15,562 bases of DNA from Anthoceros angustus (Eukaryota; Plantae; Anthocerotophyta). Of this stretch, positions 1 through 15,562 are shown piece by piece (positions within the stretch are counted from its first letter, which is position 1; every line of letters begins with the position of its first letter). The stretch is taken from the NCBI GenBank assembly GCA_010909165.1, contig VJWM01000409.1, positions 1 to 15,562 of the forward strand, given 5' to 3'. The notes under the pieces were generated by a model, which worked only from the letters and a program-made list of their open reading frames with translations, was not told where the DNA came from and made no database searches. A program made the translations under genes and the position numbers.

Positions 1-486
1 ATGTTATGTCAGCAGGGGAAGCTGAGGCCGTTGGAGCCCTGGAATCTCTGGCGCAGACAGACTCTGCTGTCTGGTCTCTGTTGTACACTGTGCTGAAACT
101 GTGTACAGCTAAGAAGGATTTGGTTGTGGGGCGACGAGTTCATGATCTCACTGTCAAACTTGATTCGAATGCATACTTGGGAAAACCATATCTTGCGCAT
201 GTATGCATGTCTTAGAGGAGGCCATGGATGTGTTCACCAGGTGGGGAAACCAGATGCCTTCATGTGGTTTTCCATAATCTCTGCATACGCTAAGCATGGG
301 AAACCTAATGAGGCCATACAACTGTACCATGAGATGCGTAGGTCGGGAGTGAAGGCGAATGGTCACGTCTTTGTAGCTGCCTTACAAGCTTGTGCATTGG
401 CCGCCGACTTGGAATCTGGCAGGAAAGTGCACTCTGATGTTTTACACAGTGGCATTCCTCCTAACTTGTTTGTTGGCAACTGCCTG

Positions 487-1295
487 GTGGACATGTATGC
501 AAAATGTGGCGAACTGGAAGATGCACGCCAGGTTTTCGACAACATGGGGAGAAAGGATGTGGTGACATGGAATGCCCTGATATCTGGGTATGCAAAATGT
601 GGTGAACTGGAAGATGCACGCCAGGTTTTTGACAGCATGGCCACAAAGGATGTGGTGACATGGACGGCACTGATTGCTGGGTATGCACAGCAAGGGCTCG
701 GCCAAGAGGCGCTTGTCGTGTATGAACAAATGGAGCAAGATGGGCGTATTTTGGCTAACCATTTCACTTTGTCTTGCCTTCTGAAGGCCTGTGGAACCAC
801 TGGTGCATTACAGAAGGGCAGGCAGCTGCACTCACATATTGTGGAAAGAGGACTGCTGGATAACGTAGTGGTGAGCACCTGCCTGGTGGACATGTATGCA
901 AAATGTGGTGAACTGGAAGCTGCACGCCAGGTTTTTGACAGCTTGCCCAGGAAGGATGTGGTTACATGGACCGCCCTGATTGCAGTACAGCAAGCAAGGA
1001 CTCGGCCAAGAGGCGCTTGTTGTGTATGGACAAATGGAGGAGGCGGGCCTCGTTTTGGCTGACAATGTTACTTTTTCTTGCCTGTTGAAGGCCTGTGCGA
1101 GCACTGGTGCCTTACAGAAGGGCAGGCAGCTGCACTCACAGATTGTCAAAAGAGGACTGCTGGATGACGTAGTGGTGGGCACCTGCTTGGTAGATATGTA
1201 TGCACAATGTGGTGAACTGGAAGCTGCACGCCAGGTTTTCGACAGCATGAACACGAAGAATGTGGTGACATGGACCGCCCTGATATCTGGGTATG
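487..1295 (+). repeat. Intragenic tandem duplications of PPR-coding DNA: a 93-bp S/SS unit and ~306-bp P-L-S triplets
   Basis: tatgc(a)aaatgtgg(c/t)gaactggaag(a/c)tgcacgccaggtttt recurs at about 496, 589, 895 and 1199 (the last with gcacaa). cagaagggcaggcagctgcactcaca is identical at about 811 and 1116. Confidence 0.85.
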
Positions 1296-1684
1296 GTACT
1301 TGTGATGATGGTCAGAAGGCACTAGCTTGTTTTGAGGAGATGTTAGTTGCCGGTATTCAGCCTCAGGATGCCACTTTTACTAGCCTTCTTGCAGCATGCA
1401 GTCATGGGGGACTGGTCGACGAGGGTCGCAAGCACTTTGCTTCCATGGCTGAGCAGCATGGCATCAAACCTACTATGGAGCATTACACCTGCATGATTGA
1501 TCTTCATGGCCTGTTGTGGCTTGACGTCTGCTATTATAGATGAGGAGAAGCGATATAGTTTTGTTAAGCATGTTGGACCTCAGGAGGCACCTGCCTATGT
1601 GCTCATGGCCAATGCCTACGCAGATGCAGGTAGGTGGGTCGATGTAGACAGGATTGAGACACAGAGAGGGCAGCAGGAGCTAAC

Positions 1685-2089
1685 AAGAAACCTGCAGTGG
1701 CGACCATTGAGGTGGAGAAGCAGGTACATACATTTGTGGTAGGAGACAGGAGAGAGGATGTTGCGCGCAAGGTGGAGAGCATGAATGCACGTCTGAAACA
1801 CGACGGGGGCCACATACCTCACACAAGGTTGGTGTTGAAGCCAGTGTGCGAGAAGGAAAAGGAAGATGCTCTTTGTGGGCATGCGGAGAAACTAGCTCTG
1901 GCGTTTGGTCTTATGAATACTCCGAGTGGAACACCTCTGGTGGTGACAAAGAATCTACGCATGTGCAGTGACTGCCACAGTTCCACGGAGATCATGTCAA
2001 GGCTTGAACAGAGAGACATTGTTGTAAGGGATGGGTACCGTCTGCATCGATTTGCAGCTGGTTGTTGCAGTTGTAAGGGTCGACCATGA
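1685..2089 (+). CDS. DYW:KP deaminase-like domain, GRP C-terminal variant (open reading segment)
   Basis: aag aaa cct gca gtg gcg (1685-1702) = KKPAVA, the KPAxA motif that replaces the PG box. It is followed by HAEKLA (HxE), KNLRMCSDCH (CxxC) and HRFAAGCCSCKGRP-stop. Zinc ligands and the catalytic Glu are intact. Confidence 0.92.
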   Translation, partial: KKPAVATIEVEKQVHTFVVGDRREDVARKVESMNARLKHDGGHIPHTRLVLKPVCEKEKEDALCGHAEKLALAFGLMNTPSGTPLVVTKNLRMCSDCHSSTEIMSRLEQRDIVVRDGYRLHRFAAGCCSCKGRP

Positions 2090-2950
2090 GAATACGGCTT
2101 TCGCAAATTTGCTTGCATAACTCTGGAGATACCGTCCGAACTTGAGACATGGATGGCCAACCACTGATCCTGGCACCTCTCATCATCGTAACAGAAAGAA
2201 TCAGAGTGGAGGGGAGGACGGTGGGACCACGCCAGCGTGTGCCTCGTCCGGACTTGCTTGCGATCTTGGTGAACACGGGCTCAGAGCTTGGGGCTCCGGG
2301 TGCAGGCCCGTAAGTTGGCTCGATGCTGATCTCGGTATCTCCAGTTTATTCCGTGGGAGAGTGGATCGGTGATCCTGCCTGCATGAGCAAGTGTGGATGC
2401 ATGGTGTCTTCAGACAGGACAACTCCAACATCCCTGTCACTAGTTGGAACTTGACAGAGACTTGAGGGTCATTGAAACCCAGTACACAAGCTGCTTTAGA
2501 CGGCCATTCTGGAGTCTGGACAGCCAGGGCAGAGGACACGCGCTTTCCAGGTAAAAGCCCAGTTCTTACTTTTTTCGCAAAGGCCGCCACCTTATACTGC
2601 TTCATGAAGTAAGCGCCTGGTGTATATGATGCTGAAAATTGCCATGCGAAAAAGGTGCCGGGTCTGCACAATCACAGCAAGTCGGTACACTCGGTCTACA
2701 GACCGTACCTCGAGGGTGGTTCAACAGGGTAATGGCGAAATGATTACTTTTGAAAAAATAAGGTTCAGTAGAATTATTTACATTTATAAAATTTTTGATA
2801 TTTATAAAAAATAATTTTATTAAATTTTAAATTTTATTACAATACATAGGTATCTATATAGAACTAATAGATATGTATAGATCTCCAAAACAGGTCTCCT
2901 AATTTTCCACAAAATCTACTTTCTTGTTTTTGGCATCTTAAACTTGTAAA

Positions 2951-3442
2951 TGTTTACACATTGAGTAACACCTCTCAACGGGTGGAAAACCACGAGTTAG
3001 AAGCAAAACCAGAGTAATAATCAACTTATTACAAAGATTAGGCCTCCAAGTAGCCCGCCCTCCTCTTTCTAGGAGGACTCGCAGACATGACCCTGTCCCG
3101 CTTCTTTCTTAAATCACGAGTCAACAAGAACATACAGAGCTGGAGGGCTAGAGAGACTCCCCATCTTTGCCTAAGCTAGGAGCTTAGCTCTCTCCACTCA
3201 CCTCCCTCCACAAAGCTCCTTACAAGACCTCCCCTCTTACAAAGCAACAAGTGCTCTCACAACCCAGCAACAAGTGCTCTCAAGGCACAACTGAATTGTC
3301 TTTTAGCCTGTGGCGAGTCTCCTTTTATACTCAAGCCCTAGCTACAATCTTAATAACTTACTTAAGCTTAAGCTTTATTTACTACCACACTTCCCAGGGT
3401 GCACGTGCTAACATGCTCTTAGTGTACTGCTTCTTCTAAACA
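2951..3442 (-). mobile_element. Putative decayed solo-LTR-like segment
   Basis: Termini tgttta (2951) and taaaca (3442) are inverted repeats. TATA-like tataaaagg on the minus strand at 3321-3329. 17-bp direct repeat agcaacaagtgctctca at 3243 and 3266. Shares motifs with 4050-4523. No target-site duplication found. Confidence 0.35.
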
Positions 3443-4049: not shown

Positions 4050-4523
4050 TACTAGGAGGTTAGGGGAGGACTAAAGAGATAATAACACACAAGAACACCA
4101 ACACTAGGTGTCCAAGTCGCTCCACCTCCTTTGAAAGACGATCTTAGCGAATAACATGTCTACTCCAATTTATTATAGTAAGAGTCAACAAGAGTACATG
4201 AGATTGATGGGCTTCCATCTTTATCTCGAGCTAGGTGCATAGCTCTCTCCAATCTGCCTCACATAGTTCTCTCGACAATCTCCTCCTCACAACTCTCTTT
4301 CAGATACACACTCGAGGTTCCCATAGCCTCTAGGAACCCCAGTCCTATCCTCTACAAAAGTGTGGGCACAAGTGCTAGGAATTATTCCCTAGAGCTAGCC
4401 TCATCGCTTTCATCGGGTGGCTTATTTCCTGCCCAAGTACCTGCCTAAGATATACTAGCTTACTTAAGCCCTGAGCTAAGCCTCACTATCATTAACCACA
4501 TATTGCATATCTTGTTCTTGACA
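4050..4523 (-). mobile_element. Second decayed LTR-like segment related to 2951-3442 (left boundary uncertain)
   Basis: Colinear shared motifs gagtcaacaaga, ccatcttt, gctagg, tagctctctcca and cttacttaagc. Similar end: cttgttcttgaca versus cttcttctaaaca. Confidence 0.33.
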
Positions 4524-5041
4524 TTAGGTCCGTTGACATGACTGAACTGCTTAATCAACTAATCTCGCCAGAGTCTACCCAGGCTTTTAACTATAATTCC
4601 TTCCTAACCGAGACCAACGGGAGCACCCTAACGCTATGTTTGTGCAATGGTCTCAACTTCACCCCCTAGCCACATATCGGTGGCAACACTACCGTCCCAT
4701 CGAGCTCGGATATCGGCTCATCCAATCATGGCTAGCTACAAGCTACTATGACATAAGATTTGCACAATGATCAAGCTCGATTTTGGTACTTCAACGACAA
4801 AAAAGCTATCGAGTTTTTGGGGCAAGTTTATTGAACGACAAGTTTTGGCTTTCAAAGCCCCATACCTTTAAGTTAAAACATATAGCATTTTGTTTTTATT
4901 TTGATATTCTCAAATATGCCCAATTTATAATAACATTGGGCCTATTCACGTGATTCTCTGCTCGACCCTCATGTGCCCATTTTTGGGCATATGAGGCTCC
5001 TCATGTGAGTTGCCCTAAAACCACCCACTTTGAATTGATTT

Positions 5042-5423
5042 GAGTTGAGTTGAGTTGAGTTGAGTTGAGTTGAGTTGAGTTGGAGTTGAGCTGAGCTGAG
5101 CTGAGTTGAGCTGAGTTGAGTTGAGTTGAGTTGAGTTGAGTTGAGTTGAGTTGAGTTGAGTTGAGCTGAGCTTGGAGTGAGTTGAGCTGAGCTGAGTTGA
5201 GTTGAGTTGAGTTGAGTTGAGTTGAGTTGAGTTGAGTTGAGTTGAGTTGAGCTTGAGTTGAGTTGAGTTGAGCTGAGTTGAGCTGAGTTGAGTTGGAGTT
5301 GAGTTGAGTTGAGTTGAGTTAGGTTGAGCTGAGCTGAGTTGAGTGAGCTTGAGCTGAGTGAGCTTGAGCTGAGTTGAGCTTAGTTGAGCTTGAGTTGAGT
5401 TGAGCTGAGAGTTGAGTTGAGCT
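5042..5423. repeat. (GAGTT)n pentanucleotide microsatellite with GAGCT, GAGCTT and GGAGTT variant units
   Basis: About 380 bp (roughly 75 units) of directly visible tandem gagtt/gagct. Confidence 0.98.
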
Positions 5424-6991: not shown

Positions 6992-9010
6992 GTAAGTGAT
7001 ATTAGATTTTGTCTAGATCTTAAAGAAGTTTGTGCATTTCAACTAAATACCAAGACTTTTGTGTTTTTAATAAGACTAGTGTTTCCATACTTATATTACC
7101 AAGGTAATAGAAATGTAAATTGTAATGAGTGTACATAATAGGTCTTTCCAAACTTATATCGAGTAGTGCAGAAATGAGCAACCACATTTTTTATATTTTT
7201 GGGCCGGTATTTATTTGGTTTTGTACATCTTCACTCAAACTCTATTCTTGATCTTTAGATTGTTAGTTTTGTTATTCTTATATTTTAAATTATTCTTATG
7301 GCGATCAAACAATTATACAGATGGATATTACAATTTCCAATGTCCCGGTTTGTTCATATTCGAATAGGAAAGCCCAATGATACAGTACTCCTTTTCAAGA
7401 TGAAGATATAGCAATTGAGCGATTTTAGAATATACAGAACTTGGATGCATCGGAGATTGGACCTTCGCATAAAAGCGACGAAAGAGTTGGAATTTGGCCA
7501 AAAGCCATATTTGGAGATGGTGGATTGTCAGAATTTGCGAATGTCTTGGACTTTGGAGGAGAAGTTGTTCGTGACAAGAGAGGTGATCGAATGGGTGAAG
7601 CCAATGGAGATGGGAAATTTGGCTCAAAATCCAAAATTTGATGGGTGCATATGAGACTAATATAGTGAATATGGATGGTAAATTACTTTTGGTTTTCTTA
7701 AATGGAGTTGGGCTATTTGGGCCATTACCTGGTCAAAAGATGGATCCTATCATATATGATGCAAAGCGTAATGTTGCAGAAACAAAGAATGATAGGATAT
7801 GGGTGATTTATGGTGGCCGGAGAAAGATTGTTGCTTCAAACCTAAGTGAGCTATTGGAGTGAGTAGATGCATTACAATATGATACTCATAAAATGAAAAA
7901 ATAAAAGAACATGATATAAAGATTGTGAGTCATTTATTTTGGCGGTGTTATCAAGTTCAAAAAAAAAAACTTTCAAGTTTGAGCATAGTTTGTGACAAAA
8001 GAGAGAGGCTTTGTTATATCTCCGGTGTCTCCATGCATAGTAGAGTCAAGACTTGTAGTAACCTTTTGTTCTATTGTGACTAAAAGATGTCTCAGAAAGT
8101 TCAAGTTTATATTTCTCCTAGGGCGAGAGAGGAATACTACAAAAAAAATGTACCTGAATACTGGAATCTTACCTCCCTCCTGAAAGCTCGCACACATCAA
8201 CATGATGTTGTTGTTGGTGCTGCTCTTGTCTACCATGAAAGCGCATCTTGATCGCCATGTCGTGCTTTAGTGGTTTCGGGACCCTAAACCCGAATAGACT
8301 TGAGGCATGCATGGTACAAACGTGAAGATGAGAAGTCTATGGTTAGGCACTTGTCAGCCTTGTGCTTACTTTTGCAAAGTAAGCGTGGCGACCATGCCTA
8401 ATGTCTAGATAGTCTCATCAAGCAACAAAAAAAAAAACCACTGCCTTACCGTCTCTTGCGTTTTAAAATCGGCGATCGAGGGGAAGCTCTGCCACACACG
8501 AGGTACACTCAGATTCATGTATAAGCACTTCCTCTGAGCCAGCACAAATTGCTAAACAAATCTAATAGCGAGATATATAGGTGCAAACCAATAACCGGTA
8601 ACAGCAGGAGGAGCGCTGCACATCGTAGTAAGCGCGAGCACACTTTGCTACGCGAGAACAACAACAAATTCCCAACCAATACGCAAATTTCATACATCGT
8701 TTTAGAGTCATAGCTTTGGCACTCCTCACAACACCACTTGCATTGCATATCCTAGAGTGACATGAGTTATGATGCGACTTCTGTTCCAGTAAACTGATTG
8801 CATATTCTTACTTTGCCATTTAGATAAGTAATTGGATTAATTAATGCTAATCAAATACTAAACCCAAGTGGCAGAGTTTAGTATCATACCGGCATGACAC
8901 CCGAGGCCAACGTGCTCGAGACTGAGACGATCACAAAAAGAGGTGAGGGGGTGGGCGGGGGAGGTGGGGGAAGAAGAAGGGGTGGGGAGGGGAGGGGAAG
9001 AAAGAAGTAA

Positions 9011-9229
9011 TGAAATTGTGCGCACCAAGTTTAACTTGATCTTGTGTGTGGTAGCGTGTTTGCTTAGGTGAATATTCATAATTGAATTAGATATATGATT
9101 GTGGATATCACTTTCACTAGGGATCTAACCCGGGCGTGCACACTATATCGAGAATCGTGTAGTAAATGGATTTAAGACCCTGAGGAATGGTTTGACTACG
9201 TCACCTCTTGCTTATTATTCCTAGTTACA
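9011..9229 (+). mobile_element. LTR-like terminal segment (TG...CA) of the tandem unit, copy 1
   Basis: Preceded by a long polypurine tract (8936-9007). Starts TGaaatt and ends gttaCA, followed directly by TGG. Among the best-conserved parts between copies. Confidence 0.4.
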
Positions 9230-11239
9230 TGGGGTTGGGTGGATCGAATAAATTCAAAATTCTAAGCGGGACTTACTAGGTCGACTGACTAACCTGTGTG
9301 CAGGTTACCACTCCGTCGGCCGGCCCTTGATGCGCAACTAAGTACCCGCCAACCCAACGCGTTGTTGGCGGACAAGGTTGGTAGGTGAGCACTGGCTGGT
9401 TTCCAGTAGGCTCCCTCGCTACATCGGTGTGCTGTTTTGAAAACAGTCCCAACCTTATCTTATCTACGAGCCGTTCTACCCTACGAGTTACCCCTTGGCA
9501 CACCATCTGGAACCGTACTCTTCTCACCCACGAAATCTCTCTTCCCCTCAATCCCTCTCTTCTCACATTTCTCGGTTCAAGATAGCACGTTAAGGCTAGC
9601 GACTATTGCAATCACCTCCCAGATGGCCGCATGGCGAAGGAGAGTTAATCGGCGCCTCCTTCGCTTATTTCCCATCACAAATCTGTCACTGTTGGCACCA
9701 CTTTGGTACACTCCACCTCCTCAGCCCACTTGCGAAAGCAGGAACGGGCTCCGGAAGCTCTTGATGCCTACACTCCACCATCCCGTGTTGGGCTACCGTC
9801 CTCACCAAAGCCGGGATGTCGGCCAGTAAGCCACGTCATTCGACTGGCGCTCGGTGACTACTCCAGCAACAACACATTCTATAAACAATGTTAGTGCAAA
9901 TGCTGGATTCGAGACTCATAAGGAAGACTATGATTTGGGGACAGCAACCTCCTCTTATGCCACTATAGCTATGAAGAATTTTGGGCCTCTGTTATACTCC
10001 TTATAGCTGAGGCAGCCATGACCTACTACCTTGTTATTCGCCCCACTCCCTCGCAGCGGTGCTGAGAACACCCAAATCCCTCACGCGACCTATTTGCTGT
10101 GTAGACGTCTATGGCATTGACCCCATTTGGTCCCCTAAGCATTTGGCGGAGTCCCTAGTTGACCCTATTCTCGGCTCATCCCGCCTCGTGGAAGCAGGCC
10201 TGTTTCCTCCCTTCCCCAAAAGGCGGGACCCTCCCTTTGGACTCGGTTGATGCCTGTAATAGGCGCGACTTTCGTGGCGGCCACCAAGCGCCGCGACACC
10301 CCGATGTCGTATGAGTAATGTAACAGAGGTCAGTTCCCAAGAGAATGATAGGTTCTGACGCGTCTGGCACGCCTCAACTGCTTCCCACCTCCTTTACACC
10401 GCCGACCATTTGGGACTCAAACACGCAGCGCTTTTCAGCGGTTTACTACTAACACTAATTTTAACGTCCGCCGACTGTGTTCAAGGGCGGCGTGGCCAAG
10501 CGTTTAAGGACTCGTTAGCGTCGTATCCACTCCGCCCTCTGGATCGGTCCGTTCTCCTCACCACTCTCCCTTTCATCATGCTCTTTGGAAGAGTGGTGGG
10601 TTGCGTGGTCGGGACCTCCGTCGTCGTTAGCCGGGTCTCGTCACGGGCTCTACCGCCCTCCGGGAGTTCCGCCGCTCGCAGCGTTCGGTCGGTAACACGG
10701 TCCCGGCTCTGGAAGAGCGAGGTCTCGATCGTTCGCCCTGCACCACCACGTTGGGTCCATCACGGGACCTTGATCCGGTCTCCGGTACATGGGTGCTGCT
10801 TCGATGACCGGGACTCACGTTAGCAAAAGACTCATGGTCTACAAAGGCGATATCCGCCTTTTACTAGGTAGCCACCTCTTATACTCTGGCCCAAGGCGGC
10901 GCGATCTTTATTACACTCCTATTACGAAAGCCGACTCATTGTGCCTAACTTTGCACTTCTATACCCCCTATTCCGCCCTATCTCGCCGGCGGTGCTGGGA
11001 GTGCCCTTGGTTCCACCTCGGCGGTGGCCCCAATCCCTAGCTTACAGCAGTTGCGGGCGCACCCAATCGGATGATCCAGCGGCGGGCCCTTCCCTTCACG
11101 AGACTGCTCCGGGTTGAGCCACCGGCGATCGACAACGCGGTAACCACCACATCCCCTCTCCGTCCTCTCCGACCTCGGTAGTCCCTCGTGGGACCCCGGG
11201 AGGCTGCTCACTGGCGGTGGTGGTGATTCCCCTCTCCTC

Positions 11240-11545
11240 AGTCCGGACCTCGGGGTCCGGTCAACTCAGATCCCGGGACCTAGAGTCGGTCAGATGACCT
11301 CCAGTCCGGTTCCTCGGTCCGCACTCTGGAGTCAGGACCCTCGAGGTCGGTCTCGACTCGAGTCAGGACCTGGGTCGATTCTCTCCTTCAGGTGGGACCT
11401 CGAGGTCGGTCTCGACTCGAGTCCGGACCTCGGGGTCGGTCATTCAGGTAGGACTATAAAGTCCGTGCCTTATTCCGGTCCGCAATTCGGTCTCGACTGT
11501 TAGGACCTTAGGGTCCGGATCCGGTCTTGCCTAAGGTCCGGACTC
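11240..11545. repeat. Degenerate GC-rich short tandem sub-repeats (ggacctc-g(a/g)ggtcggtctcgac) within copy 1
   Basis: tcgaggtcggtctcgactcgagtc is exact at 11341 and 11400 (59-bp period). Multiple further ggacct cores. Confidence 0.8.
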
Positions 11546-12103
11546 ACGGGGTCTTGAACTTCTCCACCTAGGGTGAGTCCTGGCCCACGGACCCCGCTGG
11601 CCGGATCTTCCGGACTTTCCTCCTCCTGAGGCTCCTCCCTCATTCTGCCTCATCCACAGATAGCGCTACTAAGGTCCCTGAGTGGATCTATCCCGGGACC
11701 TTCATCTCCTCCCCTCCGATCCATCAGGTCAGGCTGATTTGAGGTTGGCTCAGGACCTCCAAGCCTTGAGGGGCTCGGGCGTGGTAGTAGGCAAAGTCTG
11801 GTCGACTTGTTGGATTGCCTCCTCCACATGCGCCGGGCACAGTCTCCCTTCTCCAAAGGTGCTCCAGTTAAGGCTGCTGCTTTTGGACACGTCTCTATCG
11901 CAAGGCCGCCCTTGGAGTTAGGCGGAATCTTGAGGCCACCAAGGATGCCTCTTGTCACTTCTGCGACCTCTGCTGGCACTCGCCCCTGCTCAGGTCTTTC
12001 CGCCCGTTTACGTTGACCAACTTTCCGACCATGGCCTTGACGTTCTCCTTCCGCCTTCCTTGGTTGGACCAGCAACCACTCCGCAGAGCTCTCTCCCCAC
12101 CAT

Positions 12104-12406
12104 TCATCCTTGCTTGAAACTCGCCATCTCCCTTCCCGAGGGTCCGTGACTCAGCCCGCTCCTTGCTTCATCCAAGTCTTTCTCCATCTTGGCGACGTCC
12201 TGCTCCTTGTTTCGCCATCGAACCTCCTCCGCCCTCCAACAGAGCTGGAGCCGCTCTATCTCCCGTTCGTGGTCCTGAATTCTTCCTTGGAGGTCCCCGT
12301 TCCGCTCCACGGTCACTTGGAGCTGCAGCTTCAAAGTCTCCTTGCGGTCTTCCATCTCCTGACGCCGCTCCTCCGTCCTTTGCAGCTGTGCCCGGAGATC
12401 CTCCAT
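12104..12406 (-). CDS. Coiled-coil ORF fragment of the tandem unit (unknown product)
   Basis: MEDLRAQLQRTEERRQEMEDRKETLKLQLQ...HEREIERLQ...VAKMEKDLDEAR is E/R/K/Q/L-rich with heptad-like Leu spacing. The frame stays open upstream (EQCTASRAEEREANNRE). Confidence 0.5.
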   Translation of the reverse strand: MEDLRAQLQRTEERRQEMEDRKETLKLQLQVTVERNGDLQGRIQDHEREIERLQLCWRAEEVRWRNKEQDVAKMEKDLDEARSGLSHGPSGREMASFKQG

Positions 12407-12502
12407 CTCCCGGTTGTTGGCCTCCCTCTCCTCTGCACGGCTTGCCGTGCACTGCTCCCTTGGCAGGCAGAAGAAAGAAGGGGTGGGGGGGGAAAGAAGA
12501 AA

Positions 12503-12708
12503 TGAAATTGTGCACCAAGTTTGTGATCTTGTGTGTGGGCGCGTGTTTGCTTGGGTGAATATTCATAATTAGTTAGATATATGATTGTGGATGTACTTTC
12601 ACTAGGGATCTAGCCGGGCGCACACTATATCCCGAATCGTGTAGTAAATGGTTCGACCCCAAGGGAATGGTTTGTTACGTCACCTCTTGCTTATTATTCC
12701 TAGTTACA
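12503..12708 (+). mobile_element. LTR-like terminal segment (TG...CA) of the tandem unit, copy 2
   Basis: Preceded by a polypurine tract (12467-12502). Starts TGaaatt and ends gttaCA, followed by gg-TGGGGGATC. Shares a 33-bp identical block (tacgtcacctcttgcttattattcctagttaca) with copy 1. Confidence 0.4.
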
Positions 12709-14794
12709 GGTGGGGGATCTAACTGGGTGGATCGAGCACGGTCAGAATTCTCCAGCCCCTTGGGACTTACTAGGTCAATGACCTTCTTTAGGGCTGGTTT
12801 AGGCGCACTCGTCGGCCCGAGCACGTGCGCCAGCTGCTAGCGTTGGCAGTGGCGGACGAGGGAAGTCCACTAGAATGAGCACTTGGTTAGCAGTGAGCTC
12901 TCGCTACATCGGTCGTGCTTTTGAAGCACCCCAAGCGTCATCCATGCCGGTATCTTGTCTACGAGGCAATGATGTTTCTACCCTTGTTGAGGAGATACCC
13001 ATGGCGGCCTTGACCCAGTAGTACTCTCTTCTCAACGCCGTCCTCTTCCCCTCAATCCTCTCTTCTCTGACTTCGTTCCAGGGCCTTGCGTTAAGGCCCC
13101 GACTATTGCAATACCTCCCGGTGGCGCGCATGGCGAAGGAGTGAGTTAATCCGGCGCCTCCCTTGGCCCTCTTGGCGCTAGCTCCCTTCTCAGCCCATCT
13201 CAAAGTGGATTTGGGCGTACTTTGGTACACTTTCGACTCCTCAGCGCCTTGCAGCAGGCCCGAGGCAGCCTCTTGATGCCTACACTCACCATCCGATGTT
13301 GAGGCTCGTCACCAAAAGCCGGGATGTCCCGGCTCGCCCACGTCACTTCAGCCAGCTTTCGCGCCTTTTTGACTCGGGCAACTTCCATTCACAAATGTTA
13401 GATACCGTCTGGATTCGGACTCATAAGGAAGATGTGATTTGGGACATGACAGCCTCGCCTCTTATATAGCTATGAAAGTGCGAGGCCTCTGTTATACTCC
13501 TTATAGCAGTGACTCTGACCATGACTACCTTATTGCATGTCTTCTGCGTACAGGTTTGCTCGGGTGAGAACTTTTCGTCCTCACTGGGTGGCGGCACCTA
13601 TTTGCGCTGTGGCGTCTATGGCATTGACCTGTCCTTGAATCCCACAGTTTGGTGGGCCAGTCCCTAGTTGACCCCTATTCTCGGCTCCCGCCCTCAGGCG
13701 GACAGCCCTTTTCCTTGATCCTCCTCTTCCCCCTCCTTGGCGGGTCCTCCCTTTGGACACCAGCGATATGGTCACCCGAGGGGTGGCTTGCTAATAAGCG
13801 CGACTTTCGGTAATGACGGTAAAGGCGCGCCTGATCCCGTGTCGTTGTATGACGAAAGAATTATCCACGTTCCCAAAGAGAATGATTAGAGTTCGTTTGG
13901 AGGTCTCAAGCGCGTGATTACTCACCTCGCACTTCCACGACCATTTTGAGACTCAAAACACATGCGCGTTCGATGGGCGATAATCTTACCACTAACTACT
14001 CTGCGTCTGCACCGAGCGACAGTGGTATAAATACGTTTGGAGACTCCGTTCGGCTTGTGTCCCTACGATCCGCCCCTACGTTCGTCCGATCCGTTCTCAC
14101 TTCGGGGACCATTACTCTCCCTCGCTCATCGATTCCTTTTGGAAAGATTTGTGGGTGGGTTACAAATGAGTCAGGACCTCGATGGAAAGTCACCTCCGTT
14201 CCACTTGAGTCTCTCGCATCCGGGCTCTACCGCCCTCGGGGTTCCATGCTCCCACGTTCGGTCGTCAACATCGGTCCCCGGCAGGCAAGGTCTCGATCGT
14301 TAAGCCTGCACACACACCACCACCATTAGGGTCCATCCCACGGGGACCTTGATCGGTCTCTCGGGCATGGGTACCTTTCGATGACTCGGGACTCGCGTTA
14401 GCAAAAGACTCACGCTCTGAGCATGGTATCACGCCGCACACTAGAGTAGCCCACCTCCTCTTATCTCTGGCAAAGGCGGCCTTGATCTTTATTACACTCC
14501 TATTACATTTGGTAGCTGACTCATTGTGCCTTTGCCTACTATGCCCTATTCCGCCCTATCGTCGCCGGTGGGGTGCCCTTGGTTCCACCTCGGCGGTGGC
14601 CCAATCCCTAGCCGGCGGTTGCGGCGCGCAGCCGGATGATCGCGGGCCTTCCTGAGACTCTGTCGGGTTGAGCTACGGCGGTGCGACAACCTTGACCTTC
14701 CACATCCTCTCCGTCCCTCTCGACCTCGGTGAGTCCACGCTACGTGGGACCACCGGAGCTACTCACTTCGTGAGTGGGTGGTGATTCCCCTACT

Positions 14795-15000
14795 CCTCAC
14801 GAGTCCGGACCTCGGGTCGATCTCGGCTCCGTCCGGACCTCGGGGTCGGTCTCGGCCTCTGGTCCGGACCTGCCGAGGTCGGTCTCGACTTCAGGACCTC
14901 ATCAGGTCTCGACTCTCTGCTCAGGACCTCGGGGTCGGCCTTCCGGACCTCGGGAGTTCCGGTCTAGGCTCACGGGGGTCGGACCTTGGTCCGGACTCAC
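14795..15000. repeat. Homologous sub-repeat array within copy 2
   Basis: Repeated ggacctcggggtcgg / ggtctcgac units at about 14808, 14836, 14878, 14895 and 14925, with different unit number and spacing from copy 1. Confidence 0.8.
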
Positions 15001-15562
15001 AGTGCCTAAGATGGGACTCACGGGGTCTTGAACCCTTCTCCACTAGGGTTAGTCCTCGCCACGGACCCCCTTTATCTTGGATCTTCAGGACTTTCCTCTG
15101 AGGCTCTCCCTCGGCTCTCCTACTCCACGATGCTACTAAGGTCCCGTGGGCTGCTATCCCCGGGACAGCCGCCCTCCCCTCACGATCCATCAGGAGGTCA
15201 GCCGATTGTGGGGTGCTCCCGGACCTCCAAGGCCTTGAGGAGCTCGGGCGTGGTAGTAGGCAAAGTGCAGATCGACTTGTTGGTGCCTCCTCCACATCTG
15301 GGAGCACCCAGGTCACTCTGTGGTAGGGAGAATCAAGGGGCACTCCCAGGGTCCTCCCACTATGGCGGCCACACTTATCCAGCGCCGTCGTTGGGTTTGG
15401 TCCCATGAGACTTGTGTGAAAGTTCGAGGCCTTGTGGTCACCAATCGCTACTGCAACTCTCGGCCTTCTCAACAAGCAAGGCGCCCTCTCTCCCTCTTGG
15501 TGCACTTGCCTTTGCTTGAAAATCGCCAATCCTCGACCTAGCGACACCCAGTCGCACCGTGG

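Follow-up and report, generated by a model that had tools for sequence, protein, structure and literature searches.

Does a short stretch of hornwort DNA that ends in an apparently perfect RNA-editing domain belong to a working editing factor? The window (the whole stretch of DNA analysed, 15,562 nt) begins inside a PPR gene whose last 405 nt, positions 1685-2089, caught the attention of a preliminary description. This had proposed that the locus, or its intact allele or paralogue, is a site-specific U-to-C editing factor. DYW:KP domains of the GRP type have been put forward in the literature as candidate enzymes of natural U-to-C editing, and designed forms of them are already active. Hornwort DYW:KP proteins fall into two subgroups, GRP and DRH (PMC9478123); the first of these is described by Gerke et al. 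2020 (cited in PMC9478123) and is the basis of the designer proteins KP2 and KP3. In E. coli these two proteins, modelled on the GRP consensus, carry out U-to-C editing at 22-26%, and this activity is abolished by HAE-to-HAA and CxxC-to-AxxA mutations (PMC9478123); the earlier statement that designed PPR-DYW:KP proteins edit U-to-C heterologously was sound. The reading that we favor is that positions 1-2089 are probably a nuclear pseudogene, the decayed copy of a PLS-class PPR-E-DYW:KP gene that is of hornwort type and belongs to the GRP subgroup.

The C-terminal segment is a DYW:KP deaminase domain of the GRP subgroup

Translation of positions 1685-2089 of the + strand gives a 134-residue DYW deaminase domain. 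It is matched by Pfam PF14432 with E = 4.3e-33, above the curated cut-off, and its 134 residues cover positions 1-91 of the 93 in the profile. An exhaustive phmmer search of 1.84 billion representatives returned 1,556 proteins at E ≤ 1e-10. The presence of the domain is thus far beyond chance. A word-indexed protein search with the same 134 residues gave only two fragments, the length window of that search excluding full-length kin, and the close family is absent from the collection searched. Exact look-ups of the ORF products of the window matched no record. The features of the segment are as follows.

1685-2086, + strand: DYW:KP deaminase domain, GRP subgroup, undamaged, 134 codons (Pfam, phmmer, tree, alignment and predicted fold)
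1688-1702, + strand: KPAVA gate motif replacing the PG box (translation and diagnostic columns)
1880-1888, + strand: HAE, comprising zinc ligand His66, KP-specific Ala67 and catalytic Glu68 (alignment; PMC9478123)
1949-1951, + strand: Lys89, the equivalent of the Lys88 reported to be essential for U-to-C editing (invariant column; PMC11845758)
1961-1978, + strand: M-CSDCH, the KP-type Met preceding the CxxC zinc ligands and His98 (alignment; PMC9478123)
1988-1990, + strand: Glu102 replacing a near-invariant Lys (K103 of DYW:PG), a hallmark of the GRP subgroup (alignment and tree; PMC9478123)
2066-2089, + strand: CSC second-zinc motif, K, GRP terminus and stop codon (translation)

The motifs had all been read correctly in the preliminary description. 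Frame 2 from 1685 opens with KKPAVATIEV in place of the PG box, KKPAVA being residues 1-6, in the columns where canonical domains show xxPGxS. HAEKLA is found rather than HSEKLA (H66-A67-E68), and CSDCH is kept, with C94 to H98 at 1964-1978 within KNLRMCSDCH. The domain ends in CSCKGRP, the codons for GRP (2078-2086) lying directly before the stop codon at 2087-2089. Frame 2 is open from 1658 until that stop, so the segment from 1670 onward is indeed without lesion.

In an alignment of 40 sequences the domain preserves all the invariant columns (E9, H66, E68, A71, K89, C94, C97, H98, R110, D116, H121, F123 and C130). The zinc-deaminase signature is present as H66-A-E68 and C94-xx-C97-H98, together with the second zinc motif of H121 and C128-S-C130, all in invariant or near-invariant columns. 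The HxE...CxxC site, the second zinc motif (H...CSC) and the active-site lysine are held in common with the canonical DYW:PG deaminases, for which the reported direction of reaction is C-to-U. Lys89 of KNLRMC is therefore a necessary feature but not one that discriminates DYW:KP, since it is also conserved in DYW:PG.

Other positions set the domain apart from the canonical type. The window has KPAVA where these have the PG box, HAE for HSE, Met for Val before the CxxC, Glu102 for Lys, and GRP for the terminal DYW; the combination of a PG-type gate with HSE was found in 99 of the 139 domains compared. HAE is reported to be specific to DYW:KP, and the substitution of Glu for the Lys partner of the DYW aspartate to be a feature of GRP (both PMC9478123). 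Glu occupies position 102 in three of the 139 aligned domains, namely that of the window and that of protein P0002, both of which end in GRP, and that of P0142, which instead has an EYV terminus and an HCE site. The domain of the window lacks the xHP tripeptide, which leaves a four-column gap in the alignment after GDRR that is common to the hornwort-like KP rows, where the PG rows have SHPQ or similar. The length is consequently 134 residues, against 136-137, and lies in the DYW:KP range of 132-134. These characters agree with the published description of the GRP subgroup: KPAxA for the PG box, HAE for HSE, Met before CxxC, retention of the active-site Lys, lack of xHP, replacement of the Lys that pairs with the aspartate, a GRP terminus, and a PLS-type PPR array and E motif upstream.

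The phylogeny leads to the same assignment. A maximum-likelihood tree was calculated for 139 DYW domains over 137 columns by a quick search, with groups labelled by motif and not by curated references. The domain of the window pairs with P0002 (SH-aLRT 95), and the two lie within a 12-member clade (SH-aLRT 96) in which HAE is found in all 12. This is nested in a 34-member non-canonical clade (SH-aLRT 99), apart from the bulk of PG/HSE/DYW domains, so that the domain does not cluster with canonical DYW:PG. The nearest named sequences in the 12-member clade are two transcripts of the hornwort Nothoceros aenigmaticus, and fern proteins (Ceratopteris and Pteridium) form a sister subclade. It is these nearest named sequences, together with the GRP hallmark, that point to a hornwort origin of the gene. 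Every sequence marker tested, together with the phylogeny, thus assigns the domain to the GRP subgroup of DYW:KP, and the classification made earlier was right.

The closest full-length relative, P0002, is an intact PPR-E-DYW protein of 753 residues from Logan assembly SRR33208241 (locus L001). Its domain is 66-67% identical to that of the window and has the same KKPAVA, HAE, E102 and GRP. It differs in having the full 95-residue S2-E1-E2 stretch that the window lacks, and its PPR array is not orthologous to that of the window. The same is true of the array of P0007, which comes from the same Logan sample.

An AlphaFold2 model of the domain, with the 40-row alignment as input, has a pLDDT of 95.7, and its predicted fold is that of a DYW deaminase. 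The best match by Foldseek is the synthetic PPR-DYW:RNA complex (PDB 9kfx), with TMq 0.92 and an rmsd of 1.5 Å, followed by the DYW domain of OTP86 (7o4f and 7o4e, TMq 0.77-0.80) and DYW1 (7w86, TMq 0.77). In predicted fold the domain is therefore like the canonical C-to-U deaminases (TMq 0.77-0.92). A search of PDB sequences found the same three proteins, and the solved domain of DYW1 aligns with residues 28-130. The PDB copy searched contained no DYW:KP structure.

The gene upstream of the domain is broken as assembled

An undamaged domain does not make an editing factor; for that, an uninterrupted frame would have to run through the PLS array, E1, E2 and DYW. No such frame exists at this locus. 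The gene and its lesions are as follows.

1-2089, + strand: PLS-class PPR-E-DYW:KP gene, a pseudogene as assembled, with its 5′ end beyond the window (Pfam PPR, PPR_2, PPR_1, E_motif and DYW_deaminase; blastx frames 3>1>2>3>2)
20-21, + strand: lesion, 4 nt missing relative to family contigs, frame 1 to frame 3 (GCTT, CTTT or CTCT inserted after 20/21 in approximately 30-38% of depth)
182-183, + strand: lesion, one extra base, frame 3 to frame 1 (97-99% of family depth is without this base in each of the four runs)
205-240, + strand: mutually compensating double frameshift within an S motif (frame 2 flanked by frame 1; G after 239 in only 10-17% of family depth)
541-633, + strand: in-frame duplication of 93 nt rather than a lesion, adding one 31-residue S-type (SS) PPR motif (repeat spacing of 93; translation)
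977-990, + strand: lesion, loss of 2 nt accompanied by clustered substitutions where a P motif begins, frame 1 to frame 2 (alignment of the neighboring PLS triplet; HSP frames switch at 984/986)
1510-1560, + strand: lesion, scrambled stretch with two frame-2 stops, shorter by about 28 codons net and lacking the greater part of the S2 motif (codon spacing; family contigs)
1561-1666, + strand: E1/E2 motif remnant in frame 3, PAYVLMANAYADAGRW... (Pfam E_motif, 1.2e-06)
1666-1667, + strand: lesion, one nt (A) missing between E2 and DYW, frame 3 to frame 2 (A after 1666 in 8-12% of depth; loose ends at 1667)

The family contigs extend upstream of position 1, with loose ends at 22, showing that the gene begins beyond the 5′ edge of the window. 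From there the reading frame is 1 for positions 1-21, 3 for 24-182, 1 for approximately 184-984 and 2 for 986-1510; the scrambled stretch with stops follows at 1510-1560, then frame 3 for the E motif (1561-1666) and frame 2 from 1667 to 2089. Blastx HSPs to intact relatives change frame in step (3>1>2>3>2), and in-frame stops are present.

The form with four inserted nucleotides at 20/21 reads continuously as LCQQGKL-F-EAVGALES. If the extra base at 182 is left uncorrected, frame 3 meets a stop at 213-215. Between 205 and 240 frame 2 gives the canonical LEEAMDVFTRWG, where the continuous frame gives CLRGGHGCVHQVG, with about 10 residues of the S motif rewritten. This compensated state appears to be common to most close family copies, since the extra G after 239 is present in so small a fraction of the depth. 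The lesion around 985 rests on the internal-repeat comparison, the contig-difference tables listing the best-supported differences only. Restoration of the A after 1666 gives ...RIETQRRAAGANKKPAVA, as in the relatives.

A further lesion affects the S2 motif. From HYxCMxDL to the gate there are 68 codons in the window, compared with 95-97 in the intact proteins P0002, P0007 and P0136, and the S2 core is missing. The family contigs leave the window after 1509 (...GRAGHLDEAE...) and rejoin it before 1581-1591 (...IVRLDPQRA...). The complete P2-L2-S2-E1-E2 block that positions the target base is consequently not found here.

The principal alternative is that the organism itself has an intact gene and that the frame breaks arose during assembly, in which case the locus would be a working GRP-type PPR-DYW:KP editing factor. 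The changes at 182, 239 and 1666 are single nucleotides in short runs of G or A and might be explained in this way. However, the loss of about 28 codons with scrambling at 1510-1560, the four-nucleotide gap at 21 and the 2-nt deletion with substitutions at 985 are atypical of consensus errors, and when all the single-nucleotide changes are reverted the S2 deletion and the stops at 1540-1560 are still there. We consider an intact gene quite unlikely.

Could the breaks instead be short introns, or sites of programmed recoding, such that the mRNA is in frame? Introns do occur in some hornwort PPR genes, although nothing specific to this locus speaks for them. Homology to the relatives and to the neighboring PLS triplets is continuous through each break, leaving no spare sequence to splice, and at S2 sequence is absent rather than inserted. 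Introns and recoding have hardly any probability, and were rejected.

The lesions are shown here, as are the identity, subtype and predicted fold of the domain and the large family in related organisms. With about five frame breaks in the targeting array and most of S2 lost, no full-length factor can be made, and the locus as assembled cannot encode an editing factor. Five or so uncompensated frame lesions and the loss of most of S2 distinguish it from working GRP genes, and its N terminus lies beyond the window. The proposal of a site-specific U-to-C editing factor does not hold for the locus itself; an intact allele or paralogue with that role is plausible, but is not specific to the DNA of this locus.

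The array has two further features of interest. The tandem duplication at 541-633 places two consecutive, near-identical 31-residue S-type motifs in an SS arrangement inside the PLS array. The adjacent P-L-S triplets at 689-980 and 993-1284 are 87% identical in DNA, and many joints in the family contigs of public runs skip about 300-400 nt. Taken together, this similarity and these joints suggest that paralogues may gain or lose whole triplets through unequal recombination.

The locus belongs to a very large family

Positions 1-3000 were compared at 90% likeness with Logan contigs of four public runs, from three related organisms (A, B and C). What these runs contain is paralogues from related organisms by the thousand, the locus itself being represented in organism A only, and there in part. 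Each run yielded between 5,736 and 56,925 contig pieces that were at least 90% alike on 1-2092. The summed word depth on 1-2092 was 10^4 to 10^6, and it fell approximately 1000-fold three bases past the stop codon. The loose ends after 2092 have no consensus (agreement 0.43-0.5), from which it follows that the copies are dispersed and alike only in their coding part. With thousands of contig pieces of such similarity, across the coding part alone, the locus is evidently a single decayed copy within a huge family.

Counts in the literature are consistent with so large a family. PPR genes make up 7.9% of the genes of Anthoceros angustus (PMC7027989), and hornwort genomes contain 1,583-2,308 PPR genes, a number that has increased chiefly through dispersed duplication resembling retroposition (PMC13386178). 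At 2090-2100 neither a common 3′ UTR nor a poly(A) tract adjoins the gene, though retroposition is the published route of PPR expansion.

The 3′ flank provides a means of recognizing the locus as opposed to the family. Positions 2093-3400 were found only in the two runs of organism A, with a word share of 0.16-0.18, and on this basis organism A has this locus or an orthologue of it, the family alone being present in organisms B and C. A 690-nt contig of organism A covers 2065-2729, with 7 substitutions and 33 gap letters relative to the window. That so many gap letters accompany so few substitutions is a further point in favor of assembly errors, and hence of the intact gene discussed above; the lesions at 21, 985 and 1510-1560 nevertheless remain of a kind that such errors seldom produce. 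The run containing this contig is guessed to be RNA, and the DNA run of the same sample contains the same flank.

An undamaged domain is expected by chance

If the gene is dead, why is its catalytic end whole? Given that the 1,684 nt upstream contain 5-7 frame lesions, the probability of finding none in 405 nt is 0.19-0.30. The undamaged state of the domain is therefore expected by chance.

Selection was assessed from substitutions relative to the family majority. At 30 well-supported sites, out of about 160 differences listed, the window has 18 non-synonymous and 12 synonymous changes, whereas 77% would be non-synonymous under neutrality (P = 0.027). As the non-synonymous share is below the neutral expectation, part of the divergence probably arose under constraint, as expected of a once-working gene. 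Within the DYW segment there are 5 non-synonymous and 4 synonymous changes, and these are conservative (E/K, D/E, I/V, M/L and L/V). This ratio does not depart from neutrality (P = 0.13), and with the chance of staying whole given above, present selection on the DYW segment is without support.

These data bear on the possibility that the DYW:KP segment is used alone, as a catalytic subunit that has no PPR array and serves E-class PPR proteins in trans, in the manner of Arabidopsis DYW1. It might be expressed from an internal start, the first ATG being at 1781 (Met33), or by way of a spliced upstream exon. The alignment of DYW1 beginning only at residue 28 shows that a DYW domain without the gate can be functional, E+ class PPR proteins without DYW are reported to be enriched in hornworts (PMC13386178), and the 690-nt contig of organism A, from the run guessed to be RNA, spans the end of the segment. 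However, the type of that run is a guess, and the flank is equally present in the DNA of the same sample. Moreover, a start at Met33 would delete the KPAxA gate that defines the subtype, and neither the intactness of the segment nor its substitutions exceed what chance and neutrality provide. Such a stand-alone subunit is very unlikely. A broader proposition is that the segment is in use in one of two ways, either as this trans-acting subunit translated from within the wreck, or as a gene-conversion donor by which the catalytic ends of the GRP family, with its roughly one thousand members, are kept similar; we would attach only a slight probability to it. By far the more probable account is that of the decayed copy, in which the intact catalytic segment would be explained most simply by a recent death of the gene and by the small size of the segment.

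The function of intact members and the value of the locus

The former function of the gene, and the U-to-C direction of the reaction, may be deduced by analogy, the direction resting on the published designer proteins of GRP consensus. In intact members about 15 or more PPR motifs would bind organellar RNA upstream of the target, with one base per motif, and the E1 and E2 motifs would position the target base. The C-terminal DYW:KP domain, with its zinc-deaminase fold and HAE...CxxC site, would then perform the pyrimidine exchange, the active-site lysine being the proposed source of nitrogen by way of a covalent intermediate.

The preliminary description regarded the amination chemistry as still largely to be worked out. 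That view is in part outdated, as active-site Lys88 is now reported to be essential and to be a crosslinking nitrogen donor (PMC11332814, PMC11845758). The donor role was proposed for the active-site lysine in PMC11332814. Lys88 of KP6 is essential for U-to-C editing, its loss switching the enzyme to C-to-U, and KP6 also performs C-to-U editing in human cells (PMC11845758). No native assignment of a factor to a site of U-to-C editing was found in the literature searched.

The domain at this locus is of the GRP-type DYW:KP kind, and the gene that it terminates is a dead member of a very large family that has already been described. A single extra broken copy matters little alone and opens no new question, and its value is modest, as annotation and as a data point. 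It does illustrate that genomes of the hornwort type contain decayed copies with a perfect-looking catalytic end beside many working PPR editing genes. Since the catalytic end can look perfect in a decayed copy, calling genes by the DYW domain alone overcounts editing factors. For assay of a native GRP domain an intact paralogue is the better choice.

Other features of the window

Downstream of the gene lies an AT-rich tract at 2740-2860. The regions 3040-3440 and 4100-4520 are similar in wording and make-up (…ctccacctcc…ctctctcca…acttaagc…), and may represent a repeat present twice or the termini of a mobile element. A long imperfect array with a period of 10 nt, resembling a microsatellite (GTTGAGTTGA / GCTGAGTTGA), occupies 4954-5419. 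From 8890 to 15562 there are direct repeats spaced by 3,469-3,581 nt, and the GC content rises to 0.55-0.62.
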